Source of the DNA: Cyanophora paradoxa CCMP329 | Taxonomy: Eukaryota > Plantae > Glaucophyta | NCBI GenBank assembly: GCA_004431415.1 | Contig: QPMI01000233.1 | Coordinates: 99,214 to 163,213 of the forward strand | Length of the DNA: 64,000 nucleotides | Direction: 5' to 3' | Shown here: positions 7,610-64,000 of the stretch, piece after piece | Layout of the letters: every line of letters starts with the position of its first letter | How positions within the stretch are numbered: position 1 is the stretch's first letter | Program-made: the position numbers and the translations under genes | Notes under the pieces: generated by a model | The model's input: the letters and a program-made list of their open reading frames with translations, nothing else | Databases searched by the model: none | Told to the model about the DNA's origin: nothing

Positions 7610-8244
7610 TCGGCAATGTCGGCATGCGGTGCCATGCGCAGGCTCGGCACTGAGTCGGCACTGACTCGGCAGCCTCGGCGCCGAGTCCGCCGACTCGCCG
7701 CCGAGTCGACGACGACTCGACGTCCCTGCTTTCAAGTTTCTTATGTGAAGTTATAATTACCGGTATGTCTGGGGGTCTGGGCCGTCTGGCCCCCGTCTGG
7801 GGGCTGGCAGTGCCTGGCACTGCGGCACTGCCGCAGTGCGCAGTGCGCACTGCCGCAGTGCAGCACTGCAGCAGCCGCTGAGCAGCCGCCGCTGAGGCTG
7901 CTGAGCCTGCACTGCCCTGCATGCGCAGTGCAGCCCGGCCTTTCGCCGAGTCGCAATAGTACTGCCGGTACTAGGCTTAGTAGGCTAGTGCATGCCATGA
8001 TGCATATCAGCAGCATATGATGCGCATGCGCACGCGCAACTTGGCAATTGCCAAGTTGCAAGTTGCGCCGCTGCTGCCGGGCCGCATTTTGCGCGGAAAT
8101 TGCGCCCCAGCTGCAGGCTGCAGCCTCCAGGGTCCAGGCCTGGCGCCTGACAGCAGCTCCAGCCGTATCATGGCATCGGTACCGGTGTCGGTATCGACGA
8201 TCAGGATGAGAAGCACGTATATCAACAGCGGTCTCCGCCTGCGC

Positions 8245-11897: not shown

Positions 11898-12296
11898 CGG
11901 GCCGGGGTTGTCAATTGCAAAAAAAAAAAATTTTGCTCCCCTTAGGGGTTCTCGGGCCGGGCCGTACTGGGGCGATTGGGGTTGTCAATTGCAAGGATCC
12001 CCGGGGGCCCTAGGCCTGAGGAGTACAGCGAATCCACACCTAAAAAATATACAGATATAATTCCGCTGTCATTTCATCAAGCGAAACCCTTTTACAGAAT
12101 GAAAAAGAAAAAGCTGATCTGCTGCCTTAGAGCACTAATGATTCGATTAAAATTCGATCATGATCACATCATTACATGTTTTTCGACAAAGAAACCCTAC
12201 GTCGAGAAAGATTACCTCTAACACTACTAGCGCGTTTCCGATAACGAAATATTAATGACAAAATTGGAATATATATATAGCCGAGCCGAGCTAGAG

Positions 12297-15200
12297 TCAG
12301 GGGAGCAACGCGGGCTCGGGGAGCGGGGGCCGAGGGCTCGGGCCCCCCCGCGCCGATTGCGGCGCGGCGCTAGCATCCGCGCCCTCCACGGCGGGCGGCT
12401 GCAGCGCCGGCCCCGCGGCCGGTCCAGGTGCAGGCCCCGGAACCGCCTCCACGGCCACAGCGATTTCCGCCGGCGGCTCGGGCGGGGCGCGGGCCCGCTG
12501 GATCTGCTCCAGCGTCGCCCGGATCTCCCTATCGACATCGGTCCGTTAGACATCTCCAAGCGCACAGCCGCGCGGTTCGAAGGTTCGAAGCCTCAATATA
12601 AGGGGCCGCCCCGCAGCAGCAGAGGCGCGCCCCGCCCCCCGGCCCCGAACGAAGCCTAAGGGGCCGCCCCCGTTAGGTTTGGCGTGCGCACACGAAGGAG
12701 GGGCGCTTGTGGGGCTTCTTCTCGAGGCACGAGGCGACGACTCCCCTCAGCGAGGCCGGCAGCGACGCGATCACGCCTGGATCGAAGTCAGCAGATCCGG
12801 AGCACAGGCGGCGCGGATTTCGCTGCGTTCGCTGCGGGCGTCGGGGTGCGGACTCTTTGGGAAGGGGTGCCCCTTGACCACCTCCTCGGGCGCCACCAGC
12901 TGGCCCCCGTGCGGCCTCGCCCCTGCGATTTGCAACGCGAACCGATCAACGCGCGTTACTCAAGCTATAGGATAGCTTTCTTGATTCTAAGAGGATGCTG
13001 CGCACCGGTGAGCATTTCGGTCAGGACGATGCCGAAGGCCCACACCTGCGAGACGGTCGCTCGAGTGTTAGGAGTGTGGGATTTGGAGTCATTTTGCGAT
13101 TTAGAGCTTCTTAAAGAAATTCGACAGTCGCTTCCGCTGAGTGCTCACGTCGGTCTTCGTCGGCACGACGTCCTTCCCGTACGTCTCTGCAGGAGCGAAA
13201 AGTAAGAAGCGTTCGAATTCACTGCTTTCGGGAGGCGCTGTGATTCTGGCCCGCGTCCGCACCAGGTGGCATGTACAATCTGCGGTGGGAAAGTGGGGCG
13301 GATTTACATCAGCACGCTTGAAATATCGCGCAAGCAATCAAATTCACAGCGCACAGGGTTCCGCGGAGAGATTTGGCTGTGTCGACGTGCCGCGAAATAC
13401 CTGCACAAAGAGACGCGCGTGGTCAGCGTATATCCCGGGGGTCCGTACGTCGCAGTCCAAGCAATGCTGGAGATATCGATGGGAGGGCGCTTGGGTTTGA
13501 ACAGATGCCACCCGCACCGAAGTCGCAGACGCGCAGCGTGTAGCCGCTGAGGGAGCTCTGCGAGATTGAAGGTAAGGAAAATCGCAAACATATTTATTCA
13601 GTTCGAAGGACGCACGTCGCTCTTGCGGTTGAGGAGGATGTTTTGGGGTTTCTGAGGCCGGACGCGGCGTGAGCTTCGCGCGCCGAGGGCCGCAGCGCAC
13701 AGATTCTTAAAATTAAAAAAGCACACCAGGTCGCGGTGGGCGACGGGCTGCGGCAGCTCGTGGTGGAGGTACGCCAGGCCTAAAACGAATCCGCGTGAAT
13801 CCGCGGTCCCACATTGGGCCCTCGCGATCGGGCGGGCGCACCGGAGGCGATCTGGAGGGCGAAGTCTAGGGCGAGGGACTCGGGGAGGACGGGGTGGCTC
13901 GCCAGCAGCGCCGAGAGCGACATGTCCGCCAGCGGCAGCACTGCGGCCGGCCGCGGGCCGGGCCGTCAGCGATCGGCACCGGCACCGGGCCCGCCTGCTC
14001 TAGTTGCAATGCTAGCCGCCTGCTAGGCGCCGGCTGCTCTAGAGAGCGCGGGCCGCGATGGCTAGCTGTAACCGCTCACCGATGTAGAGCTTGAAGCGGT
14101 CGCGGAAGATGATCTCGACGGGCAGCACGTTCGGGTGGCGGCATGCCTGTTCGAGATCGTGAGCAACGCAGTCGTGTGCGAACTCGTATAGAAACGCGTG
14201 AAAAGATTGCGCCATCTATACACTAACTAGAGATTGCGTGAAAGAAAGATGGAAACGCGTAAAGAAACGTTAAGGAAAGATTCACTGACCATTTGGATGG
14301 AGGCGCCGTGGATCTCGCGCGCGGCGACGGCGGCGTCGCCGAGGGCGACCTCTTTCACCGCCCGCCGGACGACCAGCGCCCCCGCCTCGCGCTCCGCCGC
14401 CGGCACCCACGCCGCCTTCCCCGCCGGGATCGCCACCGCGTACACTGCGCGCGATCGCCGCGCCCGTGAGCGCAAGCGAGAGCGGCTATCAACGTTACGA
14501 TGCGCTAAAAGACTCTTTCGGCCATTGAATTCGCGTCGATCTCTGTAAATTTAAGCATGAACAGCGCACCGCGTCCAAAGGCGCCCTCGCCGAGGAGCCC
14601 GAGCGGCTCGCGGACCGCCGCCAGGAGCGCCTCGGGCGGGGCCGGGATGTGCCGCACCGCCCGCGCGGCGCCCGGCGAGAGGCCGTCGCCGTTGCCGGTC
14701 TTGCCGGGGGCTTTTGCGCCCGACTGGCCCTCGCCGGCGCCGGCCAGCAGGTCGACGTCGACTTGCGTCAACGGCGGGTACTCCATGTCGATCTGCGCCG
14801 GCACCAGTGAGAACGCCGCCATCATATCGCACGAATACGATCCAATGGCCAGTGAGGAAGGCGAATTCTGCTACGAGCACGAAAGCAAAGTGAGCGCACC
14901 CAGACGGTCGTGGCGCCGTGCGAGCCCGTGCCGCCCGACGCAGAAGTCGACTGCAAAAGGGATCCTCCGGTAAACCCGCTGTTCGATCCCGAACCCGAAT
15001 CCGAGGAGCCGACTCCGAGGCCCGCCTGCCCGAGCGACACGGGCTCTGAGGCGCCGCGCGCCCGCCTCTTCCGCCGCACGTACACGAACAGCAGCACCGC
15101 GGCGAGCAGAGCCGCCACGCCTGCGGCCGCCCCGCCCGCCGCGACGCCCGCGGCCGACGCCGACCCGGACCCGGAGCTCGAGGCGCCGCCGCCCGCCGCC

Positions 15201-18200
15201 GCGCCTCCGGTTTCGCTCGGCGGCGGCGTTGGCGCGGCCCGCGAGGGCGGGGCGGGCTCGTTGGAGGAGGAGACGGGAACGATGGCGGCGCCCTCGGCCA
15301 GCTGCCACTCGACGTCGCCGGCGGGCGGGCGGCCGACGAAGGAAACGTTGGCGAGCGACTCGACGGTCCGGTCCTCCAGGCCCGGCAGGATCAGGGCCGA
15401 GGCGCGCGTGAGGTTCACCAGCGCGGCCAGCGCCGTCGACGCTGCGGCCGGCGCCGCCGGGTCGGCCACGAGGGAAAGGCGGAAGAGGATGGACCCGCAG
15501 CGGATCTCGTCGACGCGGACGCGGGCGGACGATGAGGCGGGAAGGCCGCTCCGCTCGAGGAAGCGGTAAACGAGGGCGTCGAGGGCGCGCGAGACGTCGT
15601 CGGCGCGCGTGGCGCGCAGGTACGCCTCGCACTCGGCGCGCGTGGCGGGGACGGAGAGGACGAGGGTGATCGTGGCGGCCGCGGCCGCGGGCGAGGGCGA
15701 GGGCGTGGGCGAGGGCAAGGACGGGGGCGCGGGCGTGGAGGATGGGAACGGAGTCGAGTTGGGAGGTAGAGCTGGAGGGGACGGAGATGGCGTGGTAGGG
15801 GGCGTAGCCGACGGCGTCGCGGTCGACGCGGTGCGCGGGGGGAAGGAGAGGGTCTGGGCCCGGCGCTCGCCATCGGCAGGGTACGAGCAGTTGCCCGATA
15901 CGAGCGGGATGGCGCCTGAGGAGCGGGCACGAGTGGCGCCCCCGCATCAGACGGCTCGGATCAATTTCACAGGATGCGAGCAACTGCGCTGACGCACCGA
16001 CAAGGCGGACGAAGCGCGACGGCGTCCCGGCTCCAGACGAAATCATCCTGACCGGAAATGTTAACAGAAATCCGGCGAGAAACCAATGAATTCTCGCATC
16101 CACGCACGTTGTGCAGGTGCCGCAGTCGGAGTCGTGCGCAGCATCGTCGAGCCCCACGCTGGCGTCGAGCGAGTACGGCGGGGCGGCAGCGATTTCGACG
16201 GCGCCTCCGACGGCCACCTCGAGCAGAGAGGCCGGGCCGCCCTCCTCGACGGCGAGGAGCGCCCCGTGGCAGCTGCCAAGGACGAGGCGCCGATTCTCGG
16301 TGGCGGCGATCTGCGCCCTTGGAAATCGTGCCACCCGCCGGAACCCCAGGGTAGGCGCCGCGAGATCAACCTCGCTGTCGGATCACGAAGATGTCAGAAT
16401 TTGTGCGGGAATTCGCGCGTTTTTATGCGTTGCGCACTACACGTCGACGGTGCTCGTGGAGGTAGGCGGGTCGGCGTTCGCGGAGTACCAGCGGCTCCCA
16501 ACCCGCGCGCACGCTGCGCTGGAGAGCACCGGGGCGCCGCCCTGGCCGTCGGGGACCACCGTCGACCAGGCGCGGTCCTCGCTCGAGAACCTGGCGCGAA
16601 AGTCGAGTGAGCTTTCGGTCCATGTAGTGTATTATTGCAAAGTTCTCAGATCTAGACTTCTTTGTAGATTCTTTACGGATTTGTGATTTATGCTATCATT
16701 GCGCACGCGATCAGGTCGCTCTTGCCTCCGACGCCGATTGTCCCCGCCATGACCCACACGCGGCCATCGTACACGGTGACACCTGCAGTCCATTTAAGGC
16801 CGGGGCATGTTTTGTGAAAGATTAAATTAAAGCAGCTCACAGTGTCCGGTTCTCGGATTCGGAAGCGCGGGAAGCTCGACCCAGGCGTCGAAATCGGTGG
16901 AAAACGCCCAGAACGACGACGAGAGCGCCGCGCCCCCGTCCTTGTAGCCGCCTGCAGAGCCCTCAGCTCGTGCTCGCGTGTGAAACACCGGATCTGCAAC
17001 CCGGTGCAGCGCACCAGCGCAGTAGACCGCGCGCTCGCGGTCCCACGTGCACCGCGTGCCGCGGCCCAGGATCGGTTGCTGCACGATTGCTTGTGTCCAT
17101 GCCCCCGAGTCTGTCGACATCACTCAGAAAGAGAACATGGAAGGGATACGTTTGATTCATGATGTCTTACCGACATCAAGGACATACACATCGCCGAGAA
17201 GATCGGAGCCGGCTTGCACAACGCCCGTGCCGTCCAGAGCGAACGAGCCTCCCAGCACTGTGAACATCAGGCGGCCCGCAGGGCTCCGGAAGAGGACGCC
17301 GCTGCCGACGAACTGCCGCCGGACGCTTGCCGGAGCTGGAACGTCTTGGAGGGTCAGATGATACACGCCTGCGCGGAATGCGTGAGACATTCGCTCGCAA
17401 ACTGCAACCGACTTCTCGAATAACGTTATATTAAAAACGAACCTGGAACGACAAGCGGACCCAAGGAGGTTGTCTGCGACACGGCCAGCGACGAGCGCGC
17501 CGCTACCCCGCAGCTCAGAACGTAGCTGCCAGCCCGCGATATTTGGACCGCCACGGAGACGTTGACGTTAACCGTTGCAGGCCCGGCGGCCACCTGAGGC
17601 AACTCTGTGCTGACTCTGTACGGGCCGCCGGATCCGGTGCAGCTCGTGTCGACGGCGACAACGCTCTGTCCAGTCCAGATACCCACTTCGAGTTCCACGA
17701 GAGACGCGTTGAAAGCACGTTGCACGTAAACGGCCGGGGCCCATGGCGAGGCTGCGCATAGTATTTAAATACTGGAAAAAATCGAGGAGCAATCGAAATC
17801 CTGCAGAACGCACCGACAGGGACGGTAACGTTTGATCGAACGGGCGGAGAAAACAGATCGATAGACGATCGGACACGAGTGGAGCAGGCCAGCGTGTACG
17901 AAGCATTGTATGACGATAAGACAGAGATGGAAAGGGTCTTCGAAAAGACAAAATCTCCGGAGACGCTCGCATCAAGCGCGTAGGGGCCGCCAAAGCCGTC
18001 ACAGGTGGTGATGACAGAAACTATGCTCTGCCCGGCACCGAAGACTGCGTTAGCGCTTATGAGAGTGCTGTTCTGAGCCACAAAGTTTGCCGATGGCGCC
18101 GCGGGAACAGCTTGAAAGAAATGTAAGCATCAGTTCAGTGCGTGGGATGGACGAAACATAAGTATCGGCGCACCAGCAGGGACCCACACATATCCAGACG

Positions 18201-21200
18201 GCACAGCCAGCTCCGACGGAAGGCCCGTCGACCCCCTCACCAGCGCCGCGCACGCCAGCGTGTAGTTCCCGCTGTACTTGGGCGCCACCGTCAGTGCCAC
18301 GCTCGCCTCCGCCGCCGCCCCGTCGCTCGCGTTGACGGAAGCAAATGCAGCGTACGGGCCGCCGTGGCCCGAGCAGTTCAGCTCCGCTCTTGCGACGCTC
18401 TGGCCCGGCGTGAAGTGCACTGCGGCTGTTACGCGTGTCGCGTTGTTCACGACCACCACGACATCCGACGGGGCCCAGGGCGTCGCTGCACGAGCGCAGC
18501 TGATAAGAAACGTGGCATCCTGTCTGCTCCTGGCAGCGCATGCGAACCTGCAGGCACATCAACCGCAAACGACGACGTTTCCGACGCCAGGCCTGTTGAT
18601 GCTCGCGCGAGGGTCGAGCACGCCAGTCTGTAGCCTCCCGTGTACGACAGCGCAATGGCGAGCTCCACTGCCGTCCCGGAAGCGCCGGCGTCGGTGACCG
18701 CGACGCTCCTTGCGTACGGGCCGCTGAAGCCCTCGCACGCCAGCTCCAGCGCCGCTACGCTCTGGCCGGCGGTGAACTTGAAGAGAAACGCGACACGCGT
18801 CGCGTTTGTGGCCGCGGCCGACTCGACGGACGGCCGCCAAGGAGACGCTGTGTGAAAGCGCCGCAGAGTCAGCGAACGATGGCAAGCTCGCGGTTAACCT
18901 TGAGCAGACGTCGCAAACTCAACCGCTACTCGGAGGGCGCTCACCGGGAGGAACGGTGGCGATCTCTGCGAACGCGACAGATGCCGACGGCAGTCCCGCG
19001 GACGCCCGGACCAGTGCTGTGCACGCCAGCGTGTAGTTCCCGAAGTACTTCGGCGCCACCGTGAGCGACACGTTGGCTACGGCCACCGCTCCATCGTTCG
19101 CGTTGACTAAAGCGGATGCATAGTACGGGCCGCCATGGCCCGAGCAGTTCAGCTCCGCCCTCGCGACGCTCTGGCCCGGCGTGAACCGCAGCACGGCCGT
19201 CACGCGGGTCGCGTTCTCCACAGACACAGCGACGCCCGACGGGGCCGAAGGCGCCGCTGCGCGCGCGCAGAGCGCCGTCGGTTGATTCGCAACGTAATGC
19301 ATCCTGTGAACGGGGCGGCGGGGCAGCGCGTGCGAACCTGCAGGCACGTCGACTGCGAATGCCGACGCTTCCGACGCCAGGCCTGTTGACGCTCGCGCGA
19401 GGGCTGAGCACGCCAGCCTGTAGCCTCCCGTGTACGATGGCGCGACGGCGAGCTCTACAGCCGTCCCGGAAGCGCCAGTGTCGGAGACCGGTACAGGCTT
19501 TCCGTACGGTCCGCCGAAGCCCTCGCACGCCAGCTCCAGCGCCGCTACACTCTGGCCCGCTGTGAAGTTCAGGAGAACTGAAATGCGTGTCGCGTTTGTT
19601 GCCGCGGCCGACTTGATGAATGGCCGCCAAGGAGACGCTGCGCGAAGGTGCGACAGAGTCAGCGGATTCCGGCGAGCTCACGACCACCCCTCAAAAAAAG
19701 TCGCTCACCGGGAGGAATCGTGGCGATGTCTGAATACGTGACAGCTGCCGACTGTAGTCCCGTGGACGCCCTCACGAGCGTTGTGCACGTGAGGCTGTAG
19801 TTTCCGCTGTACTTCGGCTCCACCGTCAGCGACACGTTGGCCCCCGCCACCGCCCCATCGCTGGCGTTGACGGCGGCAGCCACCGAGTAGAGCCGTCCGT
19901 CGCCGGAGCAGTTCACCTCCGCCCATGCGACGCTCTGGCCTGGCGTAAAGCGCAGGACGGCCGTTGCGCGAGTCGCGTTCTCCACAGACACCGCAAGCTC
20001 CAACGGGTCCCAGGGCGAAGCTGCCGAACACATCAAAGTCAGCGGTCGTGGGCAGCAAGCCGACATGAGTCTCCAGCTGCAAGCTTCGGCCCTGGCCTTG
20101 CGAACTATTTTGCGTCAAATCGTTCCAATCCTACTATCCCTCCCGTCTAGCTAAATAGAGACACTCATTCTCGCCCTTATGATCGGTCCCAACGCTAACG
20201 AACAACGCACCAGCCGGAACCCACACTGAGCTCGACGGCACAGCCAGCGCCGACGGAAGGCCCGTCGACCCCCTCACCAGCGCCGTGCACGCCAGCGTGT
20301 AGTTCCCGCTGTACTTCGACGCCACCGTCAGTGCCACGCTCGCCTCCGCCGCCGCCCCGTCGCTCCCGTTGACGAAAGCGAATGCGGCGTACGGGCCGCC
20401 ATGGCCCGAGCAGTTCAGCTCCGCCCTCGCGACGCTCTGCCCCGGCGTGAACCGCAGCAAGGCCGTCACGCGGGTCGCGTTCTCCACAAACACAGCGACG
20501 CTCGACGGGCCCGAAGGCGCCGCTGCGCGCGCGCAGAGCGCCGTCGGTTGATTCGCAACGTAATGCATCCTGTAAACGGGGCGGCGGGGCAGCGCGTGCG
20601 AACCTGCGGGCACGTCGACTGCGAACGCCGACGCTTCCGACGCCAGGCCTGTTGACGCTCGCGCGAGGGCTGAGCACGCCAGCCTGTAGCCTCCCGTGTA
20701 CAATGGCGCGACGGCGAGCTCCACTGACGTCCCGGAAGCGCCAGTGTCGGAGACCGGTACAGGCTTTTCGTACGGTCCGCCGAAGCCCTCGCACGCCAGC
20801 TCCAGCGCCGCTACGCTCTGGCCCGCTGTGAAGTTCAGGAGGACAGAAATGCGTGTCGCGTTTGTTGCCGCGGCCGACTTGATGAATGGCCGCCAAGGAG
20901 ACGCTGCGCGAAGGTGCGACAGAGTCAGCGGATTCTGGCGAGCTCACGACCACCGGTACCCCTCAAAAGAAGTCGCTCACCGGGAGGAATCGTGGCGATA
21001 TCTGAATACGTGACAGCTGCCGACTGTAGTCCCGTGGACGCCCTCACGAGCGCTGTGCACGTGAGGCTGTAGTTTCCGCTGTACTTCGGCTCCACCGTCA
21101 GCGACACGTTGGCCCCCGCCACCGCCCCATCGCTGGCGTTGACGGCGGCAGCCACCGAGTAGAGCCGTCCGTCGCCGGAGCAGTTCACCTCCGCCCATGC

Positions 21201-24200
21201 GACGCTCTGGCCTGGCGTAAAGCGCAGGACGGCCGTTGCGCGAGTCGCGTTCTCCACAGACACCGCAAGCTCCAACGGGTCCCAGGGCGAAGCTGCCGAA
21301 CACATCAAAGTCAGCGGCCGTGGGCAGCAAGCCGACATGAGTCTCCAGCTGCAAGCTTCGGCCCTGGCCTTGCGAACTATTTTGCGTCAAATCGTTCCAA
21401 TCCTACTATCCCTCCCGTCTAGCTAAATAGAGACACTCATTCTCGCCCTTATGATCGGTCCCAACGCTAACGAACAACGCACCAGCCGGAACCCACACTG
21501 AGCTCGACGGCACAGCCAGCGCCGACGGAAGGCCCGTCGACCCCCTCACCAGCGCCGTGCACGCCAGCGTGTAGTTCCCGCTGTACTTCGGCGCCACCGT
21601 CAGTGCCACGCTCGCCTCCGCCGCCGCCCCGTCGCTCCCGTTGACGAAAGCGAATGCAGCGTACGGGCCGCCATGGCCCGAGCAGTTCAGTTCCACCCTC
21701 GCGACGCTCTGGCCCGGCGTGAACCGCAGCACGGCCGTCACGCGGGTCGCGTTCTCCACAAACACAGCGACGCCCGACGGGGCCGAAGGCGCCGCTGCGC
21801 GCGCGCAGAGCGCCGTCGGTTGATTCGCAACGTAATGCATCCTGTGAACGGGGCGGCGGGGCAGCGCGTGCGAACCTGCGGGCACGTCGACTGCGAACGC
21901 CGACGCTTCCGACGCCAGGCCTGTTGACGCTCGCGCGAGGGCCGAGCACGCCAGCCTGTAGCCTCCCGTGTACGACGGCGCGACGGCGAGCTCCACCTCC
22001 GTCCCGGAAGCGCCAGTGTCGGAGACCGGTACAGGCTTTCCGTACGGTCCGCCGAAGCCCTCGCACGCCAGCTCCAGCGCCGCTACACTCTGGCCCGCTG
22101 TGAAGTTCAGGAGAACTGAAATGCGTGTCGCGTTTGTTGCCGCGGCCGACTTGATGAATGGCCGCCAAGGAGACGCTGCGCGAAGGTGCGACAGAGTCAG
22201 CGGATTCCGGCGAGCTCACGACCACCCCTCAAAAGAAGTCGCTCACCGGGAGGAATCGTGGCGATATCTGAATACGTGACAGCTGCCGACTGTAGTCCCG
22301 TGGACGCCCTCACGAGCGCTGTGCACGTGAGGCTGTAGTTTCCGCTGTACTTCGGCTCCACCGTCAGCGACACGTTGGCCCCCGCCACCGCCCCATCGCT
22401 GGCGTTGACGGCGGCAGCCACCGAGTAGAGCCGTCCGTCGCCGGAGCAGTTCACCTCCGCCCATGCGACGCTCTGGCCTGGCGTAAAGCGCAGGACGGCC
22501 GTTGCGCGAGTCGCGTTCTCCACAGACACCGCAAGCTCCAACGGGTCCCAGGGCGAAGCTGCCGAACACATCGAAGTCAGCGGTCGTGGGCAGCAAGCCG
22601 ACATGAGTCTCCAGCTGCAAGCTTCGGCCCTGGCCTTGCGAACTATTTTGCGTCAAATCATTCCAATCCTACTATCCCTCCCGTCTAGCTAAATAGAGAC
22701 ACTCATTCTCGCCCTTATGATCGGTCCCAACGCTAACGAACAACGCACCAGCCGGAACCCACACTGAGCTCGACGGCACAGCCAGCGCCGACGGAAGGCC
22801 CGTCGACCCCCTCACCAGCGCCGTGCACGCCAGCGTGTAGTTCCCGCTGTACTTCGGCGCCACCGTCAGTGCCACGCTCGCCTCCGCCGCCGCCCCGTCG
22901 CTCCCGTTGACGAAAGCGAATGCGGCGTACGGGCCGCCATGGCCCGAGCAGTTCAGCTCCGCCCTCGCGACGCTCTGCCCCGGCGTGAACCGCAGCAAGG
23001 CCGTCACGCGGGTCGCGTTCTCCACAGACACAGCGACGCTCGACGGGGCCGAAGGCGCCGCTGCGCGCGCAGAGCGCCGTCGGTTGATTCGCAACGCAAT
23101 GCATCCTGTGAACGGGGCGGCGGGGCAGCGCGTGCGAACCTGCGGGCACGTCGACTGCGAACGCCGACGCTTCCGACGCCAGGCCCGTTGACGCTCGCGC
23201 GAGGGCCGAGCACGCCAGCCTGTAGCCTCCCGTGTACAATGGCGCGACGGCGAGCTCCACTGACGTCCCGGAAGCGCCAGTGTCGGAGACCGGTACAGGC
23301 TTTCCGTACGGTCCGCTGAAGCCCTCGCACGCCAGCTCCAGCGCCGCTACGCTCTGGCCCGCTGTGAAGTTCAGGAGGACAGAAATGCGTGTCGCGTTTG
23401 TTGCCGCGGCCGACTTGATGAATGGCCGCCAAGGAGACGCTGCGCGAAGGTGCGACAGAGTCAGCGGATTCTGGCGAGCTCACGACCACCGGTACCCCTC
23501 AAAAGAAGTCGCTCACCGGGAGGAATCGTGGCGATATCTGAATACGTGACAGCTGCCGACTGTAGTCCCGTGGACGCCCTCACGAGCGCTGTGCACGTGA
23601 GGCTGTAGTTTCCGCTGTACTTCGGCTCCACCGTCAGCGACACGTTGGCCCCCGCCACCGCCCCATAGCTGGCGTTGACGGCGGCAGCCACCGAGTAGAG
23701 CCGTCCGTCGCCGGAGCAGTTCACCTCCGCCCATGCGACGCTCTGGCCTGGCGTAAAGCGCAGGACGGCCGTTGCGCGAGTCGCGTTCTCCACAGACACC
23801 GCAAGCTCCAACGGGTCCCAGGGCGAAGCTGCCGAACACATCGAAGTCAGCGGTCGTGGGCAGCAAGCCGACATGAGTCTCCAGCTGCAAGCTTCGGCCC
23901 TGGCCTTGCGAACTATTTTGCGTCAAATCGTTCCAATCCTACTATCCCTCCCGTCTAGCTAAATAGAGACACTCATTCTCGCCCTTATGATCGGTCCCAA
24001 CGCTAACGAACAACGCACCAGCCGGAACCCACACTGAGCTCGACGGCACAGCCAGCGCCGACGGAAGGCCCGTCGACCCCCTCACCAGCGCCGTGCACGC
24101 CAGCGTGTAGTTCCCGCTGTACTTCGGCGCCACCGTCAGTGCCACGCTCGCCTCCGCCGCCGCCCCGTCGCTCGCGTTGACGGAAGCGAATGCGGCGTAC

Positions 24201-27200
24201 GGGCCGCCATGGCCTGAGCAGTTCAGCTCCGCCCTCGCGACGCTCTGCCCCGGCGTGAACCGCAGCAAGGCCGTCACGCGGGTCGCGTTCTCCACAGACA
24301 CAGCGACGCCCGACGGGGCCGAAGGCGCCGCTGCGCGCGCGCATAGCGCCGTCGGTTGATTCGCAACGTAATGCATCCTGTGAACGGGGCGGCGGGGCAG
24401 CGCGTGCGAACCTGCGGGCACGTCGACTGCGAACGCCGACGCTTCCGACGCCAGGCCTATTGACGCTCGCGCGAGGGCCGAGCACGCCAGCCTGTAGCCT
24501 CCCGTGTACAATGGCGCGACGGCGAGCTCCACCGCCGTCCCGGAAGCGCCAGTGTCGGAGACCGGTACAGGCTTTCCGTACGGTCCGCCGAAGCCCTCGC
24601 ACGCCAGCTCCAGCGCCGCTACGCTCTGGCCCGCTGTGAAGTTCAGGAGAACTGAAATGCGTGTCGCGTTTGTTGCCGCGGCCGACTTGATGAATGGCCG
24701 CCAAGGAGACGCTGCGCGAAGGTGCGACAGAGTCAGCGGATTCTGGCGAGCTCACGACCACCCCTCGAAAGAAGTCGCTCACCGGGAGGAATCGTGGCGA
24801 TGTCGGAATACGTGACAGCTGCCGACTGTAGTCCCGTGGACGCCCTCACGAGCGCTGTGCACGTGAGGCTGTAGTTTCCGCTGTACTTCGGCTCCACCGT
24901 CAGCGACACGTTGGCCCCCGCCACCGCCCCATCGCTGGCGTTGACGGCGGCAGCCACCGAGTAGAGCCGTCCGTTGCCGGAGCAGTTCACCTCCGCCCAT
25001 GCGACGCTCTGGCCTGGCGTAAAGCGCAGGACGGCCGTTGCGCGAGTTGCGTTCTCCACAGACACCGCAAGCTCCAACGGGTCCCAGGGCGAAGCTGCCG
25101 AACACATCGAAGTCAGCGGTCGTGGGCAGCAAGCCGACATGAGTCTCCAGCTGCAAGCTTCGGCCCTGGCCTTGCGAACTATTTTGCGTCAAATCGTTCC
25201 AATCCTACTATCCCTCCCGTCTAGCTAAATAGAGACACTCATTCTCGCCCTTATGATCGGTCCCAACGCTAACGAACAACGCACCAGCCGGAACCCACAC
25301 TGAGCTCGACGGCACAGCCAGCGCCGACGGAAGGCCCGTCGACCCCCTCACCAGCGCCGTGCACGCCAGCGTGTAGTTCCCGCTGTACTTCGGCGCCACC
25401 GTCAGTGCCACGCTCGCCTCCGCCGCCGCCCCGTCGCTCGCGTTGACGGAAGCGAATGCGGCGTACGGGCCGCCATGGCCCGAGCAGTTCAGCTCCGCCC
25501 TCGCGACGCTCTGCCCCGGCGTGAACCGCAGCAAGGCCGTCACGCGGGTCGCGTTCTCCACAGACACAGCGACGCTCGACGGGGCCGAAGGCGCCGCTGC
25601 GCGCGCGCATAGCGCCGTCAGTCGATTCGCAACGTAACGCACACTATGAACGGGGCGGCGGGGCAGCGAGTGCGAACCTGCGGGCACGTCGACTGCGAAC
25701 GCCGACGCTTCCGACGCCAGGCCTGTTGACGCTCGCGCGAGGGCCGAGCACGCCAGCCTGTAGCCTCCCGTGTACAATGGCGCGACGGCGAGCTCCACCG
25801 ACGTCCCGGAAGCGCCAGTGTCGGAGACCGGTACAGGCTTTTCGTACGGTCCGCCGAAGCCCTCGCACGCCAGCTCCAGCGCCGCTACGCTCTGGCCCGC
25901 TGTCAAGTTCAGGAGGACAGAAATGCGTGTCGCGTTTGTTGCCGCGGCCGACTTGATGAATGGCCGCCAAGGAGACGCTGCGCGAAGGTGCGACAGAGTC
26001 AGCGGATTCCGGCGAGCTCACGACCACCCCTCGAAAGAAGTCGCTCACCGGGAGGAATCGTGGCGATGTCGGAATACGTGACAGCTGCCGACTGTAGTCC
26101 CGTGGACGCCCTCACGAGCGCTGTGCACGTGAGGCTGTAGTTTCCGCTGTACTTCGGCTCCACCGTCAGCGACACGTTGGCCCCCGCCACCGCCCCATCG
26201 CTGGCGTTGACGGCGGCAGCCACCGAGTAGAGCCGTCCATCGCCGGAGCAGTTCACCTCCGCCCATGCGACGCTCTGGCCTGGCATAAAACGCAGGACGG
26301 CCGTTGCGCGAGTCGCGTTCTCCACAGACACCGCAAGCTGTAACGGGCCCCAGGGCGAAGCTGCCGAACACATCGAAGTCAGCGGTCGTGGGCAGCAAAC
26401 TGACATGGGTCTCCGGCTGCGCATGCAAGCTTCGGCCCTGGCCTTGCGAACTATTTTGCGTCAAATCGTTCCAATCCTACTATCCCGTCTAGCTAAATAG
26501 AGACACTCATGCTCGCCCTTATGATCGGTCCCAACGCTAACGAACAACGCACCAGCCGGAACCCACACTGAGCTCGACGGCACAGCCAGCGCCGACGGAA
26601 GGCCCGTCGACCCCCTCACCAGCGCCGTGCACGCCAGCGTGTAGTTCCCGTTGTACTTCGGCGCCACCGTCAGTGCCACGCTCGCCTCCGCCGCCGCCCC
26701 GTCGCTCGCGTTGACGGAAGCGAATGCAGAGTGCGGGCCGCCATGGCCCGAGCAGTTCAGTTCCGCCCTCGCGACGCTCTGGCCCGGCATGAACTGCAGC
26801 GAAGCCGTCACGCGAGTCGCGTTCTCCACAGACACAGCGACGCTCGACGGGGCCGAAGGCGCCGCTGCGCGCGCGCAGAGCGCCGTCAGTCGATTCGCAA
26901 CGTATTGCATCCTGTGAACGGGGCGGCGGGGCAGCGCGTGCGAACCTGCGGGCACGTCGACTGCGAACGCCGACGCTTCCGACGCCAGGCCCGTTGACGC
27001 TCGCGCGAGGGCCGAGCACGCCAGCCTGTAGCCTCCCGTGTACGATGGCGCGACGGCGAGCTCCACCGACGTCCCGGAAACTCCTTCGTCGGAGACCGGT
27101 ACAGGCTTTCCGTACGGTCCGCCGAAGCCCTCGCACGCCAGTTCCAGCGCCGCTACGCTCTGGCCCGCTGTGAAGTTCAGGAGAACTGAAATGCGTGTCG

Positions 27201-30200
27201 CGTTTGTTGCCGCGGCCGACTTGATGAATGGCCGCCAAGGAGACGCTGCGCGAAGGTGCGACAGAGTCAGCGGATTCTGGCGAGCTCACGACCACCCCTC
27301 GAAAGAAGTCGCTCACCGGGAGGAATCGTGGCGATGTCGGAATACGTGACAGCTGCCGACTGTAGTCCCGTGGACGCCCTCACGAGCGCTGTGCACGTGA
27401 GGCTGTAGTTTCCGCTGTACTTCGGCTCCACCGTCAGCGACACGTTGGCCCCCGCCACCGCCCCATCGCTGGCATTGACGGCGGCAGCCAACGAGTAGAG
27501 CCGTCCGTCGCCGGAGCAGTTCACCTCCGCCCATGCGACGCTCTGGCCTGGCGTAAAGCTCAGGACGGCCGTTGCGCGAGTCGCGTTCTCCACAGACACC
27601 GCAAGCTGTAACGGGCCCCAGGGCGAAGCTGCCGAACACATCGAAGTCAGCGGTCGTGGGCAGCAAGCCGACATGGGTCTCCAGCTGCAAGCTACGGCCC
27701 TGGCGGGGTCTTGCGAACTATTTTGCGTCAAATCGTTTCAATCCTATCCCGTCTAGAGACATCCATGCTCGCCCTTACGAGCAGTTACAACGCTCGTGAT
27801 CAACTGCAACGCACCCGCAGGGACCCACACTGCGCCGGACGGCACAGCCAGCGCCGACGGAAGGCCCGTCGACCCCCTCACCAGCGCCGTGCACGCCAGC
27901 GTGTAGTTCCCGCTGTATTTCGGCGCCACTGTCAGTGCCACGCTCGCCTCCGCCGCCGCCCCGTCGCTCGCGTTGACGGAAGCGAATGCGGCGTACGGGC
28001 CGCCGTGGCCCGAGCAGTTCAGCTCCGCCCTCGCGACGCTCTGGCCCGGCGTGAACCGCAGCACGGCAGTCACGCGGGTCGCGTTCTCCACAGACACAGC
28101 GACGCTCGACGGGGCCGAAGGCGCCGCTGCGCGCGCGCATAGCGCCGTCAGTCGATTCGCAACGTAACGCACACTATGAACGGGGCGGCGGGGCAGCGCA
28201 TGTGAACCTGCAGGCACGTCGACTGCGAACGCCGACGCTTCCGACGCCAGGCCCGTTGACGCTCGCGCGAGGGCTGAGCACGCCAGCCTGTAGCCTCCCG
28301 TGTACGACGGCGCGACGGCGAGCTCCAGCGCCGTCCCGGAAGCACCTGCATCGGAGACCTCGAAGGTCTCTGCGTACGGTCCGCCGAAGCCCTCGCACGC
28401 CAGCTCCAGCGCCGCTACGCTCTGGCCCGCTGTGAAGTTCAGAAGGACCGAAATGCGTGTCGCGTTTGGAAAAGCCGTTGAATATAAGGACGGACTCCAT
28501 GGGCGCGCTGCATTGCAATCCGCATTAATATTGAAGATTTGTCAATGACGACAATGCAAGCATGGCATACCCGCTTGCACGTTCTGGGAGCCAAGAGACA
28601 CTGACGCTACAACCGCCTGATCGGAAGACACCGCGAAGCAGGTGCAGTTGATGCTGTACGGTCCAGCATATCGCGGCGGAAGCGTTACTTGTATGACGGT
28701 TCGTCTCGCGTCCGTTTCGTATGCCGGTTTCTTCTCGGAGAACGGCCGCATGTCGCTGTCTGCAGTGCAATTCACTTCGAGGATGCTTATTCCACGATTC
28801 GCTGAGAATGATGCGACGACGTCCAGGCTCGTTGCAGATACGCTTGAGCTCACTATCGACGCGAGTAGGAGGGAAGGGGACCCGTCGTCCGCGAGCACGA
28901 CGATGTACGGGGTGAGCGAGTGCGTCCCAAGGTCGGCGTTGCCGGCGTCTGCGATGCGGATGACGTAGTCGCCTGGCCACGTCGCGTTCGGCAGGAGGAA
29001 GGTGCGGTTGCCGCCGCCGCTGCCGCCCTCGACGTAGAAGCTGTCGATCTTGTCGCCCGTCCATGACTGAACCAGCACCATTAAAGGAAACCGCAGAAGA
29101 GCGAGTGCCGGGGGCCGAACGCACCAGAACCTTGTCTTTGGCGCTGGGAAGCAGGTACACGTCCGCGTGGAAAGGCCACGCCGCCGACGTCCACGAGACG
29201 GTAACAGAGCCGTTGGCGAAGAGCTCGAGGCCGTCGACCTGCGGGGCGAGCTCGAGCAGGCGCCCTGGAAAGCAATATTGAGCAATGACGAAAAGCAAGA
29301 CTGAGCGATGATCGAACGCACAGGACTCGACAGCGAATGTCGGCGTGTCGAGCGAGCCGCCGTCGGCGTCCGCCATGGAGAAGTGGAAGAAGTACTGGCC
29401 GCCGTTGACCGCCGCGGGGAGCTGGACCGAGAGGGTCCCGCCAGCAGAGTACAGGATGACGCCAGAGAGCAGCTGGTACTGCGAAGAATGCTCAGTGCCA
29501 GCGCAAATTCTACCAGAGCTTGTTCTACAAAGGAGGACTCGACATCAAAGGAGGAAGCTTAAGTTCAGTTCTTCAAATTTATAATTAGAGGAGGAAGCTT
29601 AAGCTGGCACAAGCTTATGTTAATTAGGCAAACCTGCACGGGGGCGAGCTGGGCGCTGGACGAGACAAGGTACAGGACGGCGGGGCCGAACGCCCGGCTG
29701 AGCGCGGAGTGGCTGACGTTGACGGAAGCGCCCCGCAGAACCGACGAGCTCCCGCCCGGAGCAGGCTGGGTCCAGCTCGCGGTCAGCGGCGCCAGCGTGC
29801 CTGCCGTCCGGATCCGTTGGAGTCGACGTCTTATTATCATGAGCAGTGGAAATCAAATCATGGAACGCACCCTGAAACTTGAACGTTCTCGAGGAGCCGT
29901 CGGCACCAATAGAGCCGCACGATACGAATCTACTTGAGCATTAGAGACGATCAAGCACGTGTGTCGACTCGACGATGCGGGGGGTACGCACAGGGTACAT
30001 GTGGATCCGAATCCAGCCCATCCCGTGTTGTAGATTGGAAAAGAGGCGATATACAAAGGCGTAGTAGAAACGAACTCTTCCTTGCCGTCTTCAATGATTT
30101 GAAGCGGTCAGCTTCAATATACACTCATGTACCTGCCTAGGACGCACCTGCAGGATTGAGCAATATCCTCACAGCGGAAGCCGAGACGGTCCGGACGATC

Positions 30201-32120
30201 AGAAATAGCCCGTTGCATAATGCCAGACCCCTCAGGGCTGAACCGTAACCTGCGTTGATGCTTCCTGCCGCTCGCCACGTCTTCGGGCCCCCGCCCGCCA
30301 GGTCGAGCTCCAGAATTTCGGAAGGATAAACTGCTCGAAACCCCGCGTCAGCCTCTCTTGACATACGTAGATCTACGGCCAAAGGAGATGCTTTTGAAAA
30401 CTGAAAATTCGAAAACCAAAACCAATTTCGAAACGAAAACGTTTTTTAAAAGATCATAGACTGTGCAAGAAGCTCGCTCAGCAGAGTCCAACAATATTCA
30501 CCCGTTGAGCCATTTTCTTTTCTCTGCCCCTCTGCAAAATAGTAATCATGAACAAGTGTTAGAAGCTCGATATCGATTCATACGTATACTAAAACGTTTG
30601 CACCGAAGAGATACCACCTACTCCCTGCAAGGAAGGTGAGACACGCAGGCACTTGAATCTAAATAGGATAAGCACCGACAAGCAAAGATTTGTGCACGGC
30701 CCGCCCCCGCCAAGGGGAAGGCCCCACCGGCGTCACGGTGGCCCAAGTCCGGCTGCTCAACGAGTAGCTGCAACGCAGCTGTCAGCAACACGCGCTCGTT
30801 TCGGTGGGGTACAGAGTACATCTCTGTTAAGGTTAATAGAGATTTAATATAGATAGCAGCGTATCTATGTAGCTAACATGTATGTAGTAAGGGGGGGTCT
30901 CTGTTCTTACCGGTAAATGAGGTCGCTGATGTAAACCACGCCGCCACTCCAGAACTGCCCGCCTGCCACCTAGAAAGGGCAAGCTAGACTGTAAGAGGAC
31001 AGTTTCGCACAAACTAGACTATGATTGAGGGGACTAGCCCGCCCGCAATCTTGAAAAGCCGGCGGGCGAAAGGTTTTGGCTGTTTCGTAGCTCAAACTAA
31101 ATTTAAAGCTTATGCCGCCGAGCTTCAGTTACGAACCCAGATGCTTCCGTTGAAGAAGGTCATGGCTGGAGGGCTTTCAGCAGGCACGGTGGCCGCAGAG
31201 ACACGCGGTCAGATAGCAGCTCTTACCGTGGTACTCCAATCCATTAGGAGCAGGGAACGGCTGCGTGTAGCTCGTGAAATTCGTGTCGAAGCTCCAGATA
31301 CTCCCTGCGGCCGTGCAGTATATGGTCTGCTCCAAGTCCCAAACGCAAGAGACTTGGTTGTACTTAGGAGATCCCACAGGGGCTTGAGTCCACTGAGCTG
31401 TCTCTGCTCTCGGCGTGCCTCAGCTCGAGCTCGATCGAGAGATGTAATTAGTCATGAGGTTTGGAAAGAAGCTCGCACCTACGTCCATTATCCACACTTC
31501 GTAGTAATAGTTCGGATACCCATTGGACCCGCCGACGACGGCGATTTTCGGCCGCTGGTCGGGGGCGCGATACGAGACGACGCCGTGATTGTAGCGCCCC
31601 GCGAAGGGGCCCGCCGTGGTCTCCGCGAAGGACACCCCGTAGCCTGCGCCGGACAGGGCGCGAGGTCAGCGGCGCGTCAGTCGAACGCGCACGGAGCACA
31701 GAGCTGGGAGATGGCCTCAGGTAGCGCACCTTGGCCGAGGGCGCCCGGGAGGAGCCCGCACAGGAGCAGCAGCGCGAGCAGCGCCCGCCGCGCGGGGCCC
31801 GCGAGCGGGGCCGGGTCTCGGCGGCCCAGGCCGAGGCCGAGGCTGGCCCTGGGGCCATGGCCGAGGACAGGGCCCGCGAGGGACGCAGTCGCCGCGTGGG
31901 TTCGAGGCCGCGGCCGGCCGGAGGCGGCTGCGGTAGCTGGCGTCTCCGACCATATGCATGGGCCTCGGTAGCTGGTAGCTGGCGTTTCCGACCCTCGGCC
32001 TCGGCCGGTCCCCCACTGGGCGGGCCCGGGCGCTCCACAAAAAGCACCGGCCGCGGGCGGCAGAGCTAGAGGCCCAGGCCTAGCTGTCGGCCTTTCTTGC
32101 TCTAACGCGTGTAGCTGCAT
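12297..32120 (-). CDS. Giant single-pass receptor-like Ser/Thr kinase: SP - kelch propeller - 2 Kre9/Knh1-like beta domains - ~28 Ig-like repeats - kelch propeller - Ser/Pro stalk - SEA-like - TM - kinase
   Basis: Signal peptide ALLALLLLCGLLPGALGQ (~31730-31790). TM VAALLAAVLLFVYV-RRKRR (~15060-15150). Spliced kinase exons at ~12700-14600 give GEGAFGRVY, RAVKE, CRHPNVL, GLAYLHH..VAHRDLKPQNILL, VCDFGISR, RGTLLYMPPE, DVWAFGIVLTEMLTG, CLEKKPHKRPSF. Stop at 12297-12299. Start codon uncertain (nearest in-frame ATG at 32120). Confidence 0.85.
18170..28510 (-). repeat. Intragenic tandem array, ~1,266-1,272-bp unit made of three ~100-codon exons (B-A-C) plus their introns
   Basis: Marker CGAACTATTTTGCGTCAAATC at ~20101, 21373, 22639, 23909, 25175, 26447 and 27714; near-identical ORFs recur in the ORF track. 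Confidence 0.97.
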
Positions 32121-33376
32121 GCGCACTGAGATACTGCGGCGGATCAGCTATAGCTAGCGGTGCTGCCTGCAGCGCCGGAGGGTCGCCGGCCGATGGTGGG
32201 TGGCTGACACTGGCTGTCTGGCTCTGCCTAGCTATGAACGCTGCGTACGCTTGGCTGATAGCTGATGTGCTCAAAGCTGTAAATGCGCGTCGTTAGCTAG
32301 CTAAACCGCTGGAGCCGCGGCGCTGCACACATATGCATGTCTGTGGCACCCAGGCCTAGGCGACCTAATCAGCGCGCCGTTAGCCGCATATGTATATATA
32401 CGCGTGCCGCGCCGCTGCGGGTGCGCGGGCCGGGGTGCAAAGCCTCACCGCACACGTCCAAAACGCATCCACACGCATATATACGCATATGCATAACACG
32501 AGGAAGCGGCGCGCCCGGCTCGGCGCCACCCGCGCCTGAAGGCCGCGCCGCTTTGAACATGATCACTGGCATCGCGATCGAATCATGATGAAGACCGTCG
32601 GACTCCCGGGCCCCGGCGTTCCATCCGCGTCGCGAGGAATCTTCGCGCGAGCTTCGAGCTGCCTGCCAGGCAGCGGGCCTCAGGGCCTGCGGCGCGGACC
32701 GGATGTCAGCGGATGATCGATATCAGCGGAAGATCCGATGATCAGCCGCTGAGCCACCGCGCGCCGGCACGTCTCACCGTGGCACCGCTGGCGGCGTACG
32801 GCGTACGCGCAGCGGCGGTGGCGCACTGCGGGCCTCTGCGCCGTGCGGCACTGCGGCAGCTCACTGTCACCGTGGCACTGAGTCCGACGGTCAGCAGCGC
32901 CGGGCCGCAGGCCCGCACTGCGGCAGCGCTGCGGGAGCGCTAGCCATGCGGCGTACGCGTGGGCCCGGGGGGGTAGACTGTACTAGACCGCAATTGCAAT
33001 CAGCCATTCGGTGCACCGAATCCACCGATCGCGAAGCCCCCTTACTAATCTACTAAATTTTGGGCGATCTACAGTCATCTACTAATTATATAAATATTTC
33101 CCGCCTGCTGAAGCCGGGATTTCTTAGGGGTAGCCCCGGCCGTCTTCGCCATACAAAGGTTCTGCTAATTATACTGACACACATCATCTTAGATTCATCT
33201 AGATCTAATGAAGTTTGACCAGCTGCTAAAGTGGCAGTTTTGGCGAAGTACTAATTATTTTCCCGTACAAAATTAGCTAGTTCTAGACCACTGAGGCCAT
33301 TCATTAGCAAATCATGAATCGACTGGTCGCCGAAAAAAGTAACGGCAGATCAAGCCCAGACAAGCCGAGGGCTAGA

Positions 33377-59620: not shown

Positions 59621-60457
59621 ACAGCACGATACTGTACTAGCTATAGTCCGCTGCATATATATATTCATAGCCTGGCGGTCAGTGGCGGCCGCGGCCGGGC
59701 CTGCAAACGCACACGCATATTACGCAACCGTATATACATTACGTACGAGCGCCAGCGCACGTATACGTATATATGTCTTTGCGGCGGCCGCGCCGGGCGA
59801 TCGCTGATCGATATCGACGCCGTGCACGTGACGGTCGTCAGTGACTCGTCACATTTGGGTCCGGACCGTCGGACTCCGGACTAGTACTCCGGAGTCCGCC
59901 GGACCACGGCGCCGGCGCCGGCGTGCATTTGAGAGGCTAGGACGCGATAAGATACATACATAGCAATTGTGCCACGGAACCACGGTGAGCTGGCGCCTTG
60001 GAGGAGTCCGAAGCCGCTTTTGCGACCGCATTCGAGCTCCGGGAGTTCCATGCATACGCATACGCGTGTGCATATGTATGCATCAGCTACGTATCCGTAC
60101 ACCTGTCGCGATCGCAGCTGGCCCTCGACGAGCGGGAGAGGCCACGTCGTAGGCCTAGGCCTAGGGCCGGAGACACTAGCTGCGTTGACGTCCGTCCGGC
60201 CTATGTATATGCGAAACGCAGGCCTAGGCCACGACCATCGCTGCGACCCGCCCCCGTCCGGAGGCGGAGGCCCATATGCATGGTCGTGGACGCGAGCTAT
60301 AGCTACCGCCCCTGGCCGGCCGCGGCCATGCAGCCTCGCGGCGACTGCGCGAGCGTCCGTCCCGGGCCCTGTCCGGATCCTCGGCCATTCGGCCGGCCTC
60401 GGCCTCGGCCGCCGATCGCGAGACGCGACTCCTCCAGGGCGCTGGCGGGCGCTGCGC

Positions 60458-63400: not shown

Positions 63401-64000
63401 TGGGGACGCACTCACTCACGCAGTACATCGTCGTGCTCGCGGACCCGGGGACCGTTTCTCCGTCCCTCCTCGTCGCGTCGACAGTGAGCTCAAGCCTGAC
63501 CGCGACCAGCCTGAACGTCGCCGCCTCCTTCATGACGAACCGGGGAATAAGCATCCTCGAAGTCAACTGCACGGCTGATAGTGGCGTGCGAGCGGCAACG
63601 GGGAGGCGAGCAGTGAGCGATGCGGACGCAGGAGGAACGATGGTACCAATCACAATCATTCCACGCTACGCGGGGTCATTCAGCATTGACTGCACGTGCT
63701 CCGCGCTCTCATCGGATTCACTGCTCCTGTCATCCGTGCCTCTGGGCACTCAGATCGTCTTAGCTGGTGCGGCTTGACTTGTGACCCTTACAGCTATATA
63801 TTCTTCTCCACTCGGCCATTTATTCAGCTTTCTCGCGCAGCGCGCCCTGGGAGCCCCTCCATCGCGTCGGCCGCGGCGACGAACGCAACACGCGTCGCGA
63901 TTCTCCTCAAGTTCACCGCCGGTCAGAGCGTGGTGGCGTTGGAGCTGGCGTGCGCGGGCTTCGGCGGCCCGTACGCAAAGAGCGTCGCGGTCACCGACGC
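60458..64000 (+). CDS. 5' part of a paralog of the giant kelch/Ig-like-repeat receptor kinase (runs off the window; apparent +1 frameshift at ~63342)
   Basis: Same exon series as 28200-31800(-): CGLLPCALGQ|GYGVSFAE...AGRYNHG.VSYRAPDQR, ELDLAGGGPK.WR, GTLAPLTASWTQPAPGG, LELFANGSV, NATRV...FTAGQSV. Start codon uncertain; kinase not within the window. Confidence 0.85.

Follow-up and report, generated by a model that had tools for sequence, protein, structure and literature searches.

A probable membrane receptor kinase of Cyanophora paradoxa with two kelch propellers separated by a stalk of about 28 domains

The window analysed here is a stretch of 64,000 nucleotides from Cyanophora paradoxa CCMP329 (assembly GCA_004431415.1, contig QPMI01000233.1, positions 99,214 to 163,213), whose composition is that of GC-rich eukaryotic DNA. 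Its minus strand carries, from about 32100 down to 12297, some 60 exons that form one gene. We read it, with a probability of about 0.75, as one expressed gene whose most likely product is a TKL-type Ser/Thr kinase that crosses the membrane once (type I) and carries a very long, modular outer part. Counted from its tip towards the membrane, this part would consist of a kelch propeller (propeller 1), two Kre9/KNH-like domains, 28 disulfide-bearing and N-glycosylatable FN3/Ig-like domains and a second propeller (propeller 2); a Ser/Pro mucin-like linker, an SEA-like alpha/beta domain, the membrane helix and the kinase would follow. An earlier note, drawn from the letters of this DNA, had spliced a protein of more than 4,000 amino acids by hand and proposed a domain order. 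Both the splicing and the order were right: the whole gene corresponds to a single public model, tig00001001_g6212.t1, of 4,478 amino acids (called P0001 below; EukProt EP00741_Cyanophora_paradoxa_P006410).

Transcript support was obtained for the 3′ part of the gene. Among words sampled from 12250-18150, 52% were present in seven runs of two studies, and 38-94% in four others. Contigs from three RNA-type runs (two studies) and one DNA-type run were aligned to the window. Each of the three RNA-type runs yielded one contig of 4.0-4.2 kb spanning 18111 to 12250 and beyond, with a further 68 nt of RNA sequence on the far side of 18111 that belong to the next stalk exon. These spliced contigs link the last three stalk exons, propeller 2, the exon encoding the Ser/Pro-rich, SEA-like and membrane segments, and all 14 kinase exons. 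The contig alignment contains 15 itemised and 10 unitemised skips; after allowed shifts, all 15 itemised introns are bounded by GT..AG on the gene strand, which reads CT..AC on the plus strand. The splice joints are absent from the DNA-type run. Once joined, the exons form a single open frame that runs through the kinase to the stop codon and encodes, in this order, the end of propeller 2, the Ser/Pro linker, the SEA-like domain, the helix, the motif RRKRR, a juxtamembrane part, the kinase and a Pro/Ala-rich tail. The 3′ third of the gene is expressed as a single spliced transcript. The check suggested earlier, for a single transcript, is therefore positive for the stretch that starts with the last three stalk exons and reaches past the stop codon, but the 5′ two thirds lie outside the read coverage.

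P0001 was found by searching a library of 1.84 billion protein representatives with a profile of the stalk domain. It is 100% identical to the exons of the window, and the exon-derived translation equals it from residue ~685 onward, except for 23 codons; its last 754 amino acids are identical to the translation of the RNA-supported exons. The 23 codons (SPSLYSTAFPNATRISVLLNFTA) belong to the first exon of the stalk array (28208-28507, minus strand), from which the public model omits them. The full exon is open and agrees with the other exons of its type (type A, see below). A length-maximising exon chain was dropped, as its exons ran into introns, and a motif-bounded list was used instead.

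The kinase is well defined. Pfam Pkinase matches residues 4145-4405 of P0001 with an E-value of 8e-36 (124.2 bits, cut-off 31.7), and the RNA-supported translation contains GEGAFG, the Lys of AVK, REIH with the alphaC Glu, HRDLKPQN, DFG and PPE. HRDLKPQN marks the catalytic loop as Ser/Thr-type and, judged by its motifs, the kinase appears catalytically complete, in line with the motif-complete kinase of the earlier note. One of its exons is a micro-exon of 17 nt (13279-13263), present in the RNA contigs of three runs, which codes for LYMPP of the APE-type motif and explains 16 extra letters in the contig alignment. The earlier remark that the kinase escapes the list of open reading frames was also correct: it is missing there because its coding sequence is broken up into 14 exons, the micro-exon among them. 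Among solved structures the nearest kinases are MLK4 (107 bits, 8.9e-30), MLK1, CTR1 (2e-22), DLK and TAK1 (1e-19), and no IRAK, BRI1, BAK1, Pto-type or plant receptor-like kinase (RLK) chain was found among the best 60 structures (all at least 68.7 bits). This comparison leans towards a TKL kinase outside the RLK/Pelle group.

Upstream of the kinase, the only 19-residue window of the 4,478 amino acids with a mean Kyte-Doolittle hydropathy above 2.0 falls in the predicted membrane helix (residues 3997-4021). It is preceded by 104 N-x-S/T sites and followed by the kinase. This helix and the Ser/Pro stalk, both proposed before, are present in the RNA-supported exon. The region between linker and helix is conserved in six family members, and a Cys-Gly-Ser turn within it is invariant in six paralogs. 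Its predicted model (pLDDT 81.5) shows a beta-alpha-alpha-beta-beta-alpha-beta order with Cys-Gly-Ser in the beta2-beta3 turn, between model strands 60-68 and 72-80. A wide structural search with VIA-align matched this model to TROP-2 (Z 8.0) and to a MUC16 SEA domain (Z 7.6 over 112/132 residues), with lower values for PCDH15 MAD12 (Z 6.7-6.8), TMPRSS6 (Z 6.0) and dystroglycan (Z 5.6). Foldseek with the same model returned generic ferredoxin-like matches only, and Pfam SEA did not match P0001 even at E up to 1. The SEA-like domain of the earlier note is supported by the predicted fold only, and ‘SEA-like’ seems a fair label for fold and position, not for membership. SEA domains self-cleave at G/SVVV in the beta2-beta3 turn; that the domain described here might also self-cleave is an idea only.

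Around the linker and this domain (15183-15716, Ser/Pro- and Gly/Ala-rich), RNA and DNA contigs alike have numerous loose ends as well as joints that contain foreign letters; one such joint runs from 15201 to 15684 and includes 40 of them. Cross-matching paralog transcripts or assembly breaks in low-complexity sequence are the probable cause. A (GGGCGA)n tract occupies 15689-15739.

Both propellers were found where they had been placed (at ~29850-31640 and ~15800-17370). Propeller 1 matches Pfam Kelch_KLHDC2_KLHL20_DRC7 with 73.7 bits over residues 65-236 (cut-off 50), as well as Kelch_1, Kelch_4 and Kelch_6, the kelch families above their curated cut-offs covering residues 65-256 of P0001. 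Propeller 2 matches the same family with 60.4 bits (cut-off 50) over residues 3474-3638, and Kelch_1 at 8e-13; across P0001, Kelch_1, Kelch_3, Kelch_4 and Kelch_6 all exceed their cut-offs. Aligned with each other over ~290 amino acids, the propellers share 28% identity (E 5e-25), and all three motif pairs previously quoted as signs of homology (e.g. GSTCTL vs CGTCTT) fall in register, which bears the claim out. The exons of propeller 1 are conserved in a paralog, and their borders follow the public model together with a scan for splice sites. Propeller 2 is covered by the RNA contig, in which 436 nt of its exons are not itemised and leave thousands of frame-compatible solutions; the solution picked by kelch-like peptides proved identical to P0001. 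Exon by exon, Pfam was nearly blank (one Kelch_3 match and a faint kinase tail) because the exons are too short.

The stalk between the propellers comprises 28 domains, counted by exons and by hmmsearch, which found 28 stretches on P0001; this agrees with the ~28 two-cysteine, N-glycosylation-rich repeats reported earlier. All but one are single phase-1 exons of 297-312 nt, lying from 28507 down to 17443: the motif-bounded scan gave 26 exons from 28507 to 17814, and exon 17751-17443 makes 27. The 28th domain lies upstream, at ~28880-28572, inside the preceding exon. All 27 array exons are open and in phase 1, with good splice sites and without stops, and two of them, 18110-17814 and 17751-17443, are contained in the RNA contig. 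In the exon alignment Cys37 and Cys78 are invariant, N-A-T is nearly so, and a G-x-Y-x-L-x-C motif recurs.

At the DNA level the array is built from tandem units. A repeat search found 16 copies of a 300-nt unit with a spacing alternating between 764 and 502 nt, whereas Tandem Repeats Finder missed the array, whose period exceeds 500. The larger unit of 1.27 kb holds three exons (types A, B and C), each in phase 1 and flanked by AG and GT. Across the six closest units, identity averages 97.7% in exons and 95.5% in introns. Since the introns are nearly as alike as the exons, the units were probably duplicated recently or homogenised at the DNA level.

An AlphaFold model of a stalk domain (pLDDT 78.7) is a seven-strand sandwich. 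Its matches in the PDB are FN3 domains of LAR, neogenin, DCC and integrin beta4, with TM-scores of 0.55-0.65 and Foldseek E-values of only ~1e-3 to 1e-2; among Atlas clusters annotated as FN3, TM-scores of 0.66-0.74 were reached. The stalk domains are thus predicted to fold as FN3/Ig-like sandwiches, while no Pfam family (fn3 and Ig included) matched single stalk exons or the stalk of P0001. In the library of representatives only 25 proteins reach E 0.001 with the stalk profile. All 18 Cyanophora matches whose source was checked are from C. paradoxa, among them each match that has more than two repeats, and the three bacterial matches whose source was checked are weak and belong to Ig-like or PKD-type proteins. 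One further giant Cyanophora protein, P0011 (tig00020552_g10476.t1), carries one copy of the stalk domain next to many Ephrin_rec_like, NCD3G and TNFR-like Cys-rich repeats and Laminin_G_3; the bead is therefore used in other surface proteins too.

The membrane-distal end is less firmly delimited. In a paralog the hydrophobic segment is kept in the same frame and directly preceded by an ATG (MNATALLLLYMCGLLPCALGQGAL). The segment, with ALG/QG, is conserved there, and RRALLALLLLCGLLPGALGQG is the version of this gene, off the annotated frame. Its sole in-frame ATG lies at 32120, 110 codons upstream, and a comparison with the paralog over 31630-32160 indicates that seven codons, including the start ATG, are missing in this gene before the segment. 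In the splice-site scan the strongest donor/acceptor pair, 31730 / 31643 in phase 1, is compatible only with the frame of the hydrophobic segment. The annotated N-terminus (MAPGPASASAW...) has no signal peptide. Of the signal peptide claimed earlier, a hydrophobic segment shared with the paralog remains, but it stands in another frame than the annotated start and its nearest ATG is far off. The Kre9/Knh1-like domains fared similarly: the Kre9_KNH profile stays under its cut-off on P0001 (E 0.035, 15.3 bits, cut-off 24.6), but the corresponding region of a paralog, P0003, passes it with 25.8 bits and aligns to the pair of P0001 with 37% identity (E 1e-60). This lends weak support, at the sequence level, to a Kre9-like identity of the pair. 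Coordinates of all features are given in Table 1.

Table 1. Features of the gene and of its paralog in the window
Feature	Positions	Strand	Remarks
Signal-peptide-like hydrophobic segment RRALLALLLLCGLLPGALGQ	31730..31790	-	End of putative exon 1; frame differs from annotated N-terminus
Kelch propeller 1 (membrane-distal)	29921..31643	-	P0001 residues ~56-346; ~9 exons
Two Kre9/KNH-like beta domains	28881..29800	-	P0001 residues ~356-590
Stalk, 28 two-Cys, N-x-S/T-rich domains of ~100 amino acids	17443..28880	-	Exon scan, hmmsearch
Seventh tandem unit	28507-27246	-	90-92% alike
Six tandem DNA units of 1,264-1,272 bp, each with three stalk exons (types A, B, C) and introns	19638..27245	-	Pairwise identity 95-99%
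Kelch propeller 2 (membrane-proximal)	15998..17368	-	P0001 residues 3446-3735; 7 exons
Ser/Thr/Pro-rich mucin-like linker	15689..15844	-	Translation of RNA-supported exon 15915-14900
SEA-like juxtamembrane domain	15296..15673	-	Predicted fold; Cys-Gly-Ser at 15499-15491
Only predicted transmembrane helix	15074..15148	-	P0001 3997-4021, then RRKRR; RNA-supported exon
Protein kinase domain, 14 exons	12515..14610	-	13 GT..AG introns in RNA contigs of three runs, absent from DNA run
Stop codon and 3′ untranslated region	11972..12299	-	Stop at 12299-12297; translation ends ...PEPALLP; RNA contig 278 nt past 12250
5′ part of paralog, head-to-head, runs off window	60267..64000	+	72-93% nucleotide identity in exon blocks; exon-wise protein matches

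The gene belongs to a family of at least eight related Cyanophora gene models with 6 to 28 stalk domains, whose architectures were read with local profiles for the stalk, the SEA-like domain, the propeller, the Kre9-like pair and the kinase. In P0001 the order is propeller, Kre9-like pair, 28 stalk domains, propeller, SEA-like domain, helix and kinase; P0003, encoded on another contig, repeats this order but has 13 stalk domains. In P0005 (9 stalk domains) and P0007 (7 stalk domains), both cut N-terminally as models, the stalk is followed by kelch, the SEA-like domain and the kinase. P0002 (tig00001413_g8636.t1) has 18 stalk domains, a Pfam kelch match before the SEA-like domain, and the kinase. 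P0008 consists of a distal propeller, 6 stalk domains, SEA-like domain, helix and kinase, without a proximal propeller, and the models of P0004 (12 stalk domains) and P0006 (8 stalk domains) lack the kinase end. The family appears restricted to Cyanophora, its shared module being kelch, SEA-like domain, membrane helix and kinase, and its main difference the number of stalk domains. P0002 also shows, in its first 90 residues, a subtilisin-like motif (VVDTGV...H) at the start of the model. Either the annotation may have fused the gene with an adjacent protease gene, or the extra domain may be real; Pfam gave no protease family for P0002 at E up to 0.001.

The paralog in the window starts ~28 kb from the gene. 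Six exon blocks compared between the two gave ratios of nonsynonymous to synonymous divergence (dN/dS) of 0.20-0.45, which places both copies under purifying selection. Positive selection on propeller 1 was considered and not seen at block level in this comparison (dN/dS 0.28-0.45). Synonymous divergence is very uneven, as low as 0.16-0.20 in the linker and first Kre9-like exons against 0.8-1.1 in the other parts, and suggests patches of gene conversion between the two genes. As for the stalk itself, it probably grew via tandem duplication of the 1.27-kb three-exon unit; all exons of the unit being in phase 1, gain or loss of a unit keeps the reading frame.

How such a protein might work can be sketched from its anatomy. 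The distal propeller would bind an external partner ~100 nm from the membrane, binding or pulling would travel down the rod to the SEA-like module, and this module would change the clustering or activity of the kinase. A long-reach surface sensor, as the earlier note had it, or an adhesion-coupled sensor is a reasonable inference. Several points weigh against reading the gene as a long membrane kinase of this kind. The RNA contigs cover its 3′ third, and propeller 1 and most of the stalk rest on open phase-1 exons, the public model and paralogs. The signal peptide is unproven, the annotated N-terminus being without one and the hydrophobic segment without a close ATG. Generic ferredoxin-like folds (RAMP/Cas6) reach the same Z as the SEA matches. 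The repeat count depends on a single long-read assembly, in which the units are almost identical, and could be inaccurate. Lastly, topology, reach, ligand binding and force transmission are all inferred from anatomy.

A fibre rather than a sensor could have a similar build. The protein could be mainly a structural or adhesive surface element, such as a glycocalyx or hair-like filament or an adhesin for cell-cell, cell-prey or mating contacts, whose kinase merely reports attachment. Adhesins and mucins typically show a build like the one seen here, a rod of 28 near-identical, glycosylatable beta-sandwich domains above a mucin-like linker; tandem units of variable copy number are typical of adhesin genes; and according to the C. 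paradoxa genome paper the plasma membrane has a ‘knobbly’ surface and the flagella bear two kinds of hairs whose composition is unknown. We nevertheless hold this to be unlikely: the kinase has all its catalytic motifs, conserved across the family, and two conserved propellers favour specific binding sites. Sensing and adhesion are, moreover, compatible. Less probable still is membership of the RLK/Pelle (IRAK) group, by which the protein would be one of the seven RLKs already counted in C. paradoxa and hence part of a described family. That count stands in reviews that cite Dievart 2020 and Gong and Han 2021, and the general layout of ectodomain, membrane helix and Ser/Thr kinase is identical; the nearest solved kinases (MLK4, MLK1, CTR1, DLK and TAK1) and the lack of IRAK, BRI1, BAK1 or Pto-type chains among the best 60 speak otherwise.

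Part of the architecture could also be an artefact, either a fusion, within the model, of two neighbouring genes, one for a secreted protein with kelch and stalk and one for a kelch-kinase receptor, or a mis-assembled repeat array. The 5′ two thirds without read coverage, the 5′ errors of the public model (an N-terminus without signal peptide, 23 skipped codons) and the difficulty of assembling units 95-99% alike would fit this. However, the RNA contig joins three stalk exons, propeller 2 and the kinase, with 68 nt of the next stalk exon. The 27 array exons have neither stops nor poor splice sites and share one phase, and the order recurs in P0003 on another contig, as do stalk, kelch, SEA-like domain and kinase in P0005, P0007 and P0002. 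An artefact of either kind is very improbable. Beyond the single-pass membrane kinase that we favour lies a bolder proposal, to which we give little credence: glaucophytes, independently of plants and animals, would have invented ‘ruler’ receptor kinases whose reach (6 to 28 beads) is set by unequal crossing-over of phase-1 cassettes, and in which a pull on the distal propeller is read by a self-cleaving SEA-like module. If true, a mechanosensing design so far seen in animal mucins, Notch and adhesion receptors would here be coupled directly to a TKL kinase.

Comparison with known systems shows partial likenesses. With the RLK/Pelle kinases of plants and green algae the protein shares a single membrane pass that separates a binding part outside from a Ser/Thr kinase inside, and kelch or FN3 domains occur in some algal ectodomains. 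It differs from them by a kinase nearest to MLK, CTR1 and TAK1, and by two propellers, a lineage-specific stalk of 28 domains and an SEA-like module. Plant and green-algal RLKs measure ~600-1,200 amino acids, compared with ~4,500 here. MAP3 kinases of the MLK/CTR1/TAK1 type (TKL) are the best sequence matches of the kinase domain and have an HRDLKPQN-type catalytic loop, but to our knowledge they are cytosolic, without ectodomain or membrane helix.

Animal SEA proteins (MUC1, MUC16, TROP-2/EpCAM, TMPRSS6, dystroglycan and PCDH15 MAD12) place, as is predicted here, a juxtamembrane alpha/beta sandwich under a long glycosylated stalk, with Gly-Ser in the beta2-beta3 turn and structural Z of 5.6-8.0 to the model; the Cyanophora domain, however, has no sequence-level SEA match, and SEA proteins carry no kinase. 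The predicted fold of the stalk matches the FN3 domains of FN3/Ig-array receptors (LAR-type phosphatases, DCC/neogenin, titin-like rods), from which the stalk is set apart as a sequence family of its own, with a conserved Cys pair and a far longer array. Attractin and MEGF8 also have an extracellular kelch propeller, and the profile Beta-prop_ATRN-LZTR1 gives 40.8 and 29.1 bits, under its cut-off of 50. Lacking CUB, EGF and plexin modules, the Cyanophora protein has another architecture and is not a member of that group.

The claim that no described receptor family has this architecture holds in part. The literature search returned no relevant paper combining Cyanophora with kelch, kinase and transmembrane, and the C. 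paradoxa genome paper mentions neither kelch nor receptor. But the protein is already in a public proteome, within a family of at least eight models, and RLK ectodomains with Kelch repeats or fibronectin-type domains are reported for chlorophytes (PMC12757656, PMC10868138; one a 2026 study). The literature search found no paper that describes the protein. The ESM Atlas contains sponge and ciliate clusters that combine kelch with a kinase, which are a lead only.

Receptor kinases are central to sensing in plants and animals, and how they arose within the plant supergroup is a matter of debate. A glaucophyte, from the least studied branch of that supergroup, would here assemble its receptor kinases from different components: a TKL/MLK-like kinase, kelch propellers, a beta-sandwich bead of its own and an SEA-like module. 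With ~4,500 amino acids and a reach estimated at roughly 100 nm, the protein would be of unusual size for any receptor kinase. Graded stalk lengths together with near-identical three-exon units offer a natural experiment on the evolution of receptor length, and the invariant Cys-Gly-Ser turn leads to a simple idea, self-cleavage or force sensing. The faults of the public annotation at 5′ ends matter for receptor-kinase counts in the C. paradoxa genome. Elsewhere in the window, positions 1-8000 stand out by a very high G+C content of 70-80%; for the greater part of the stretch it is 53-67%.

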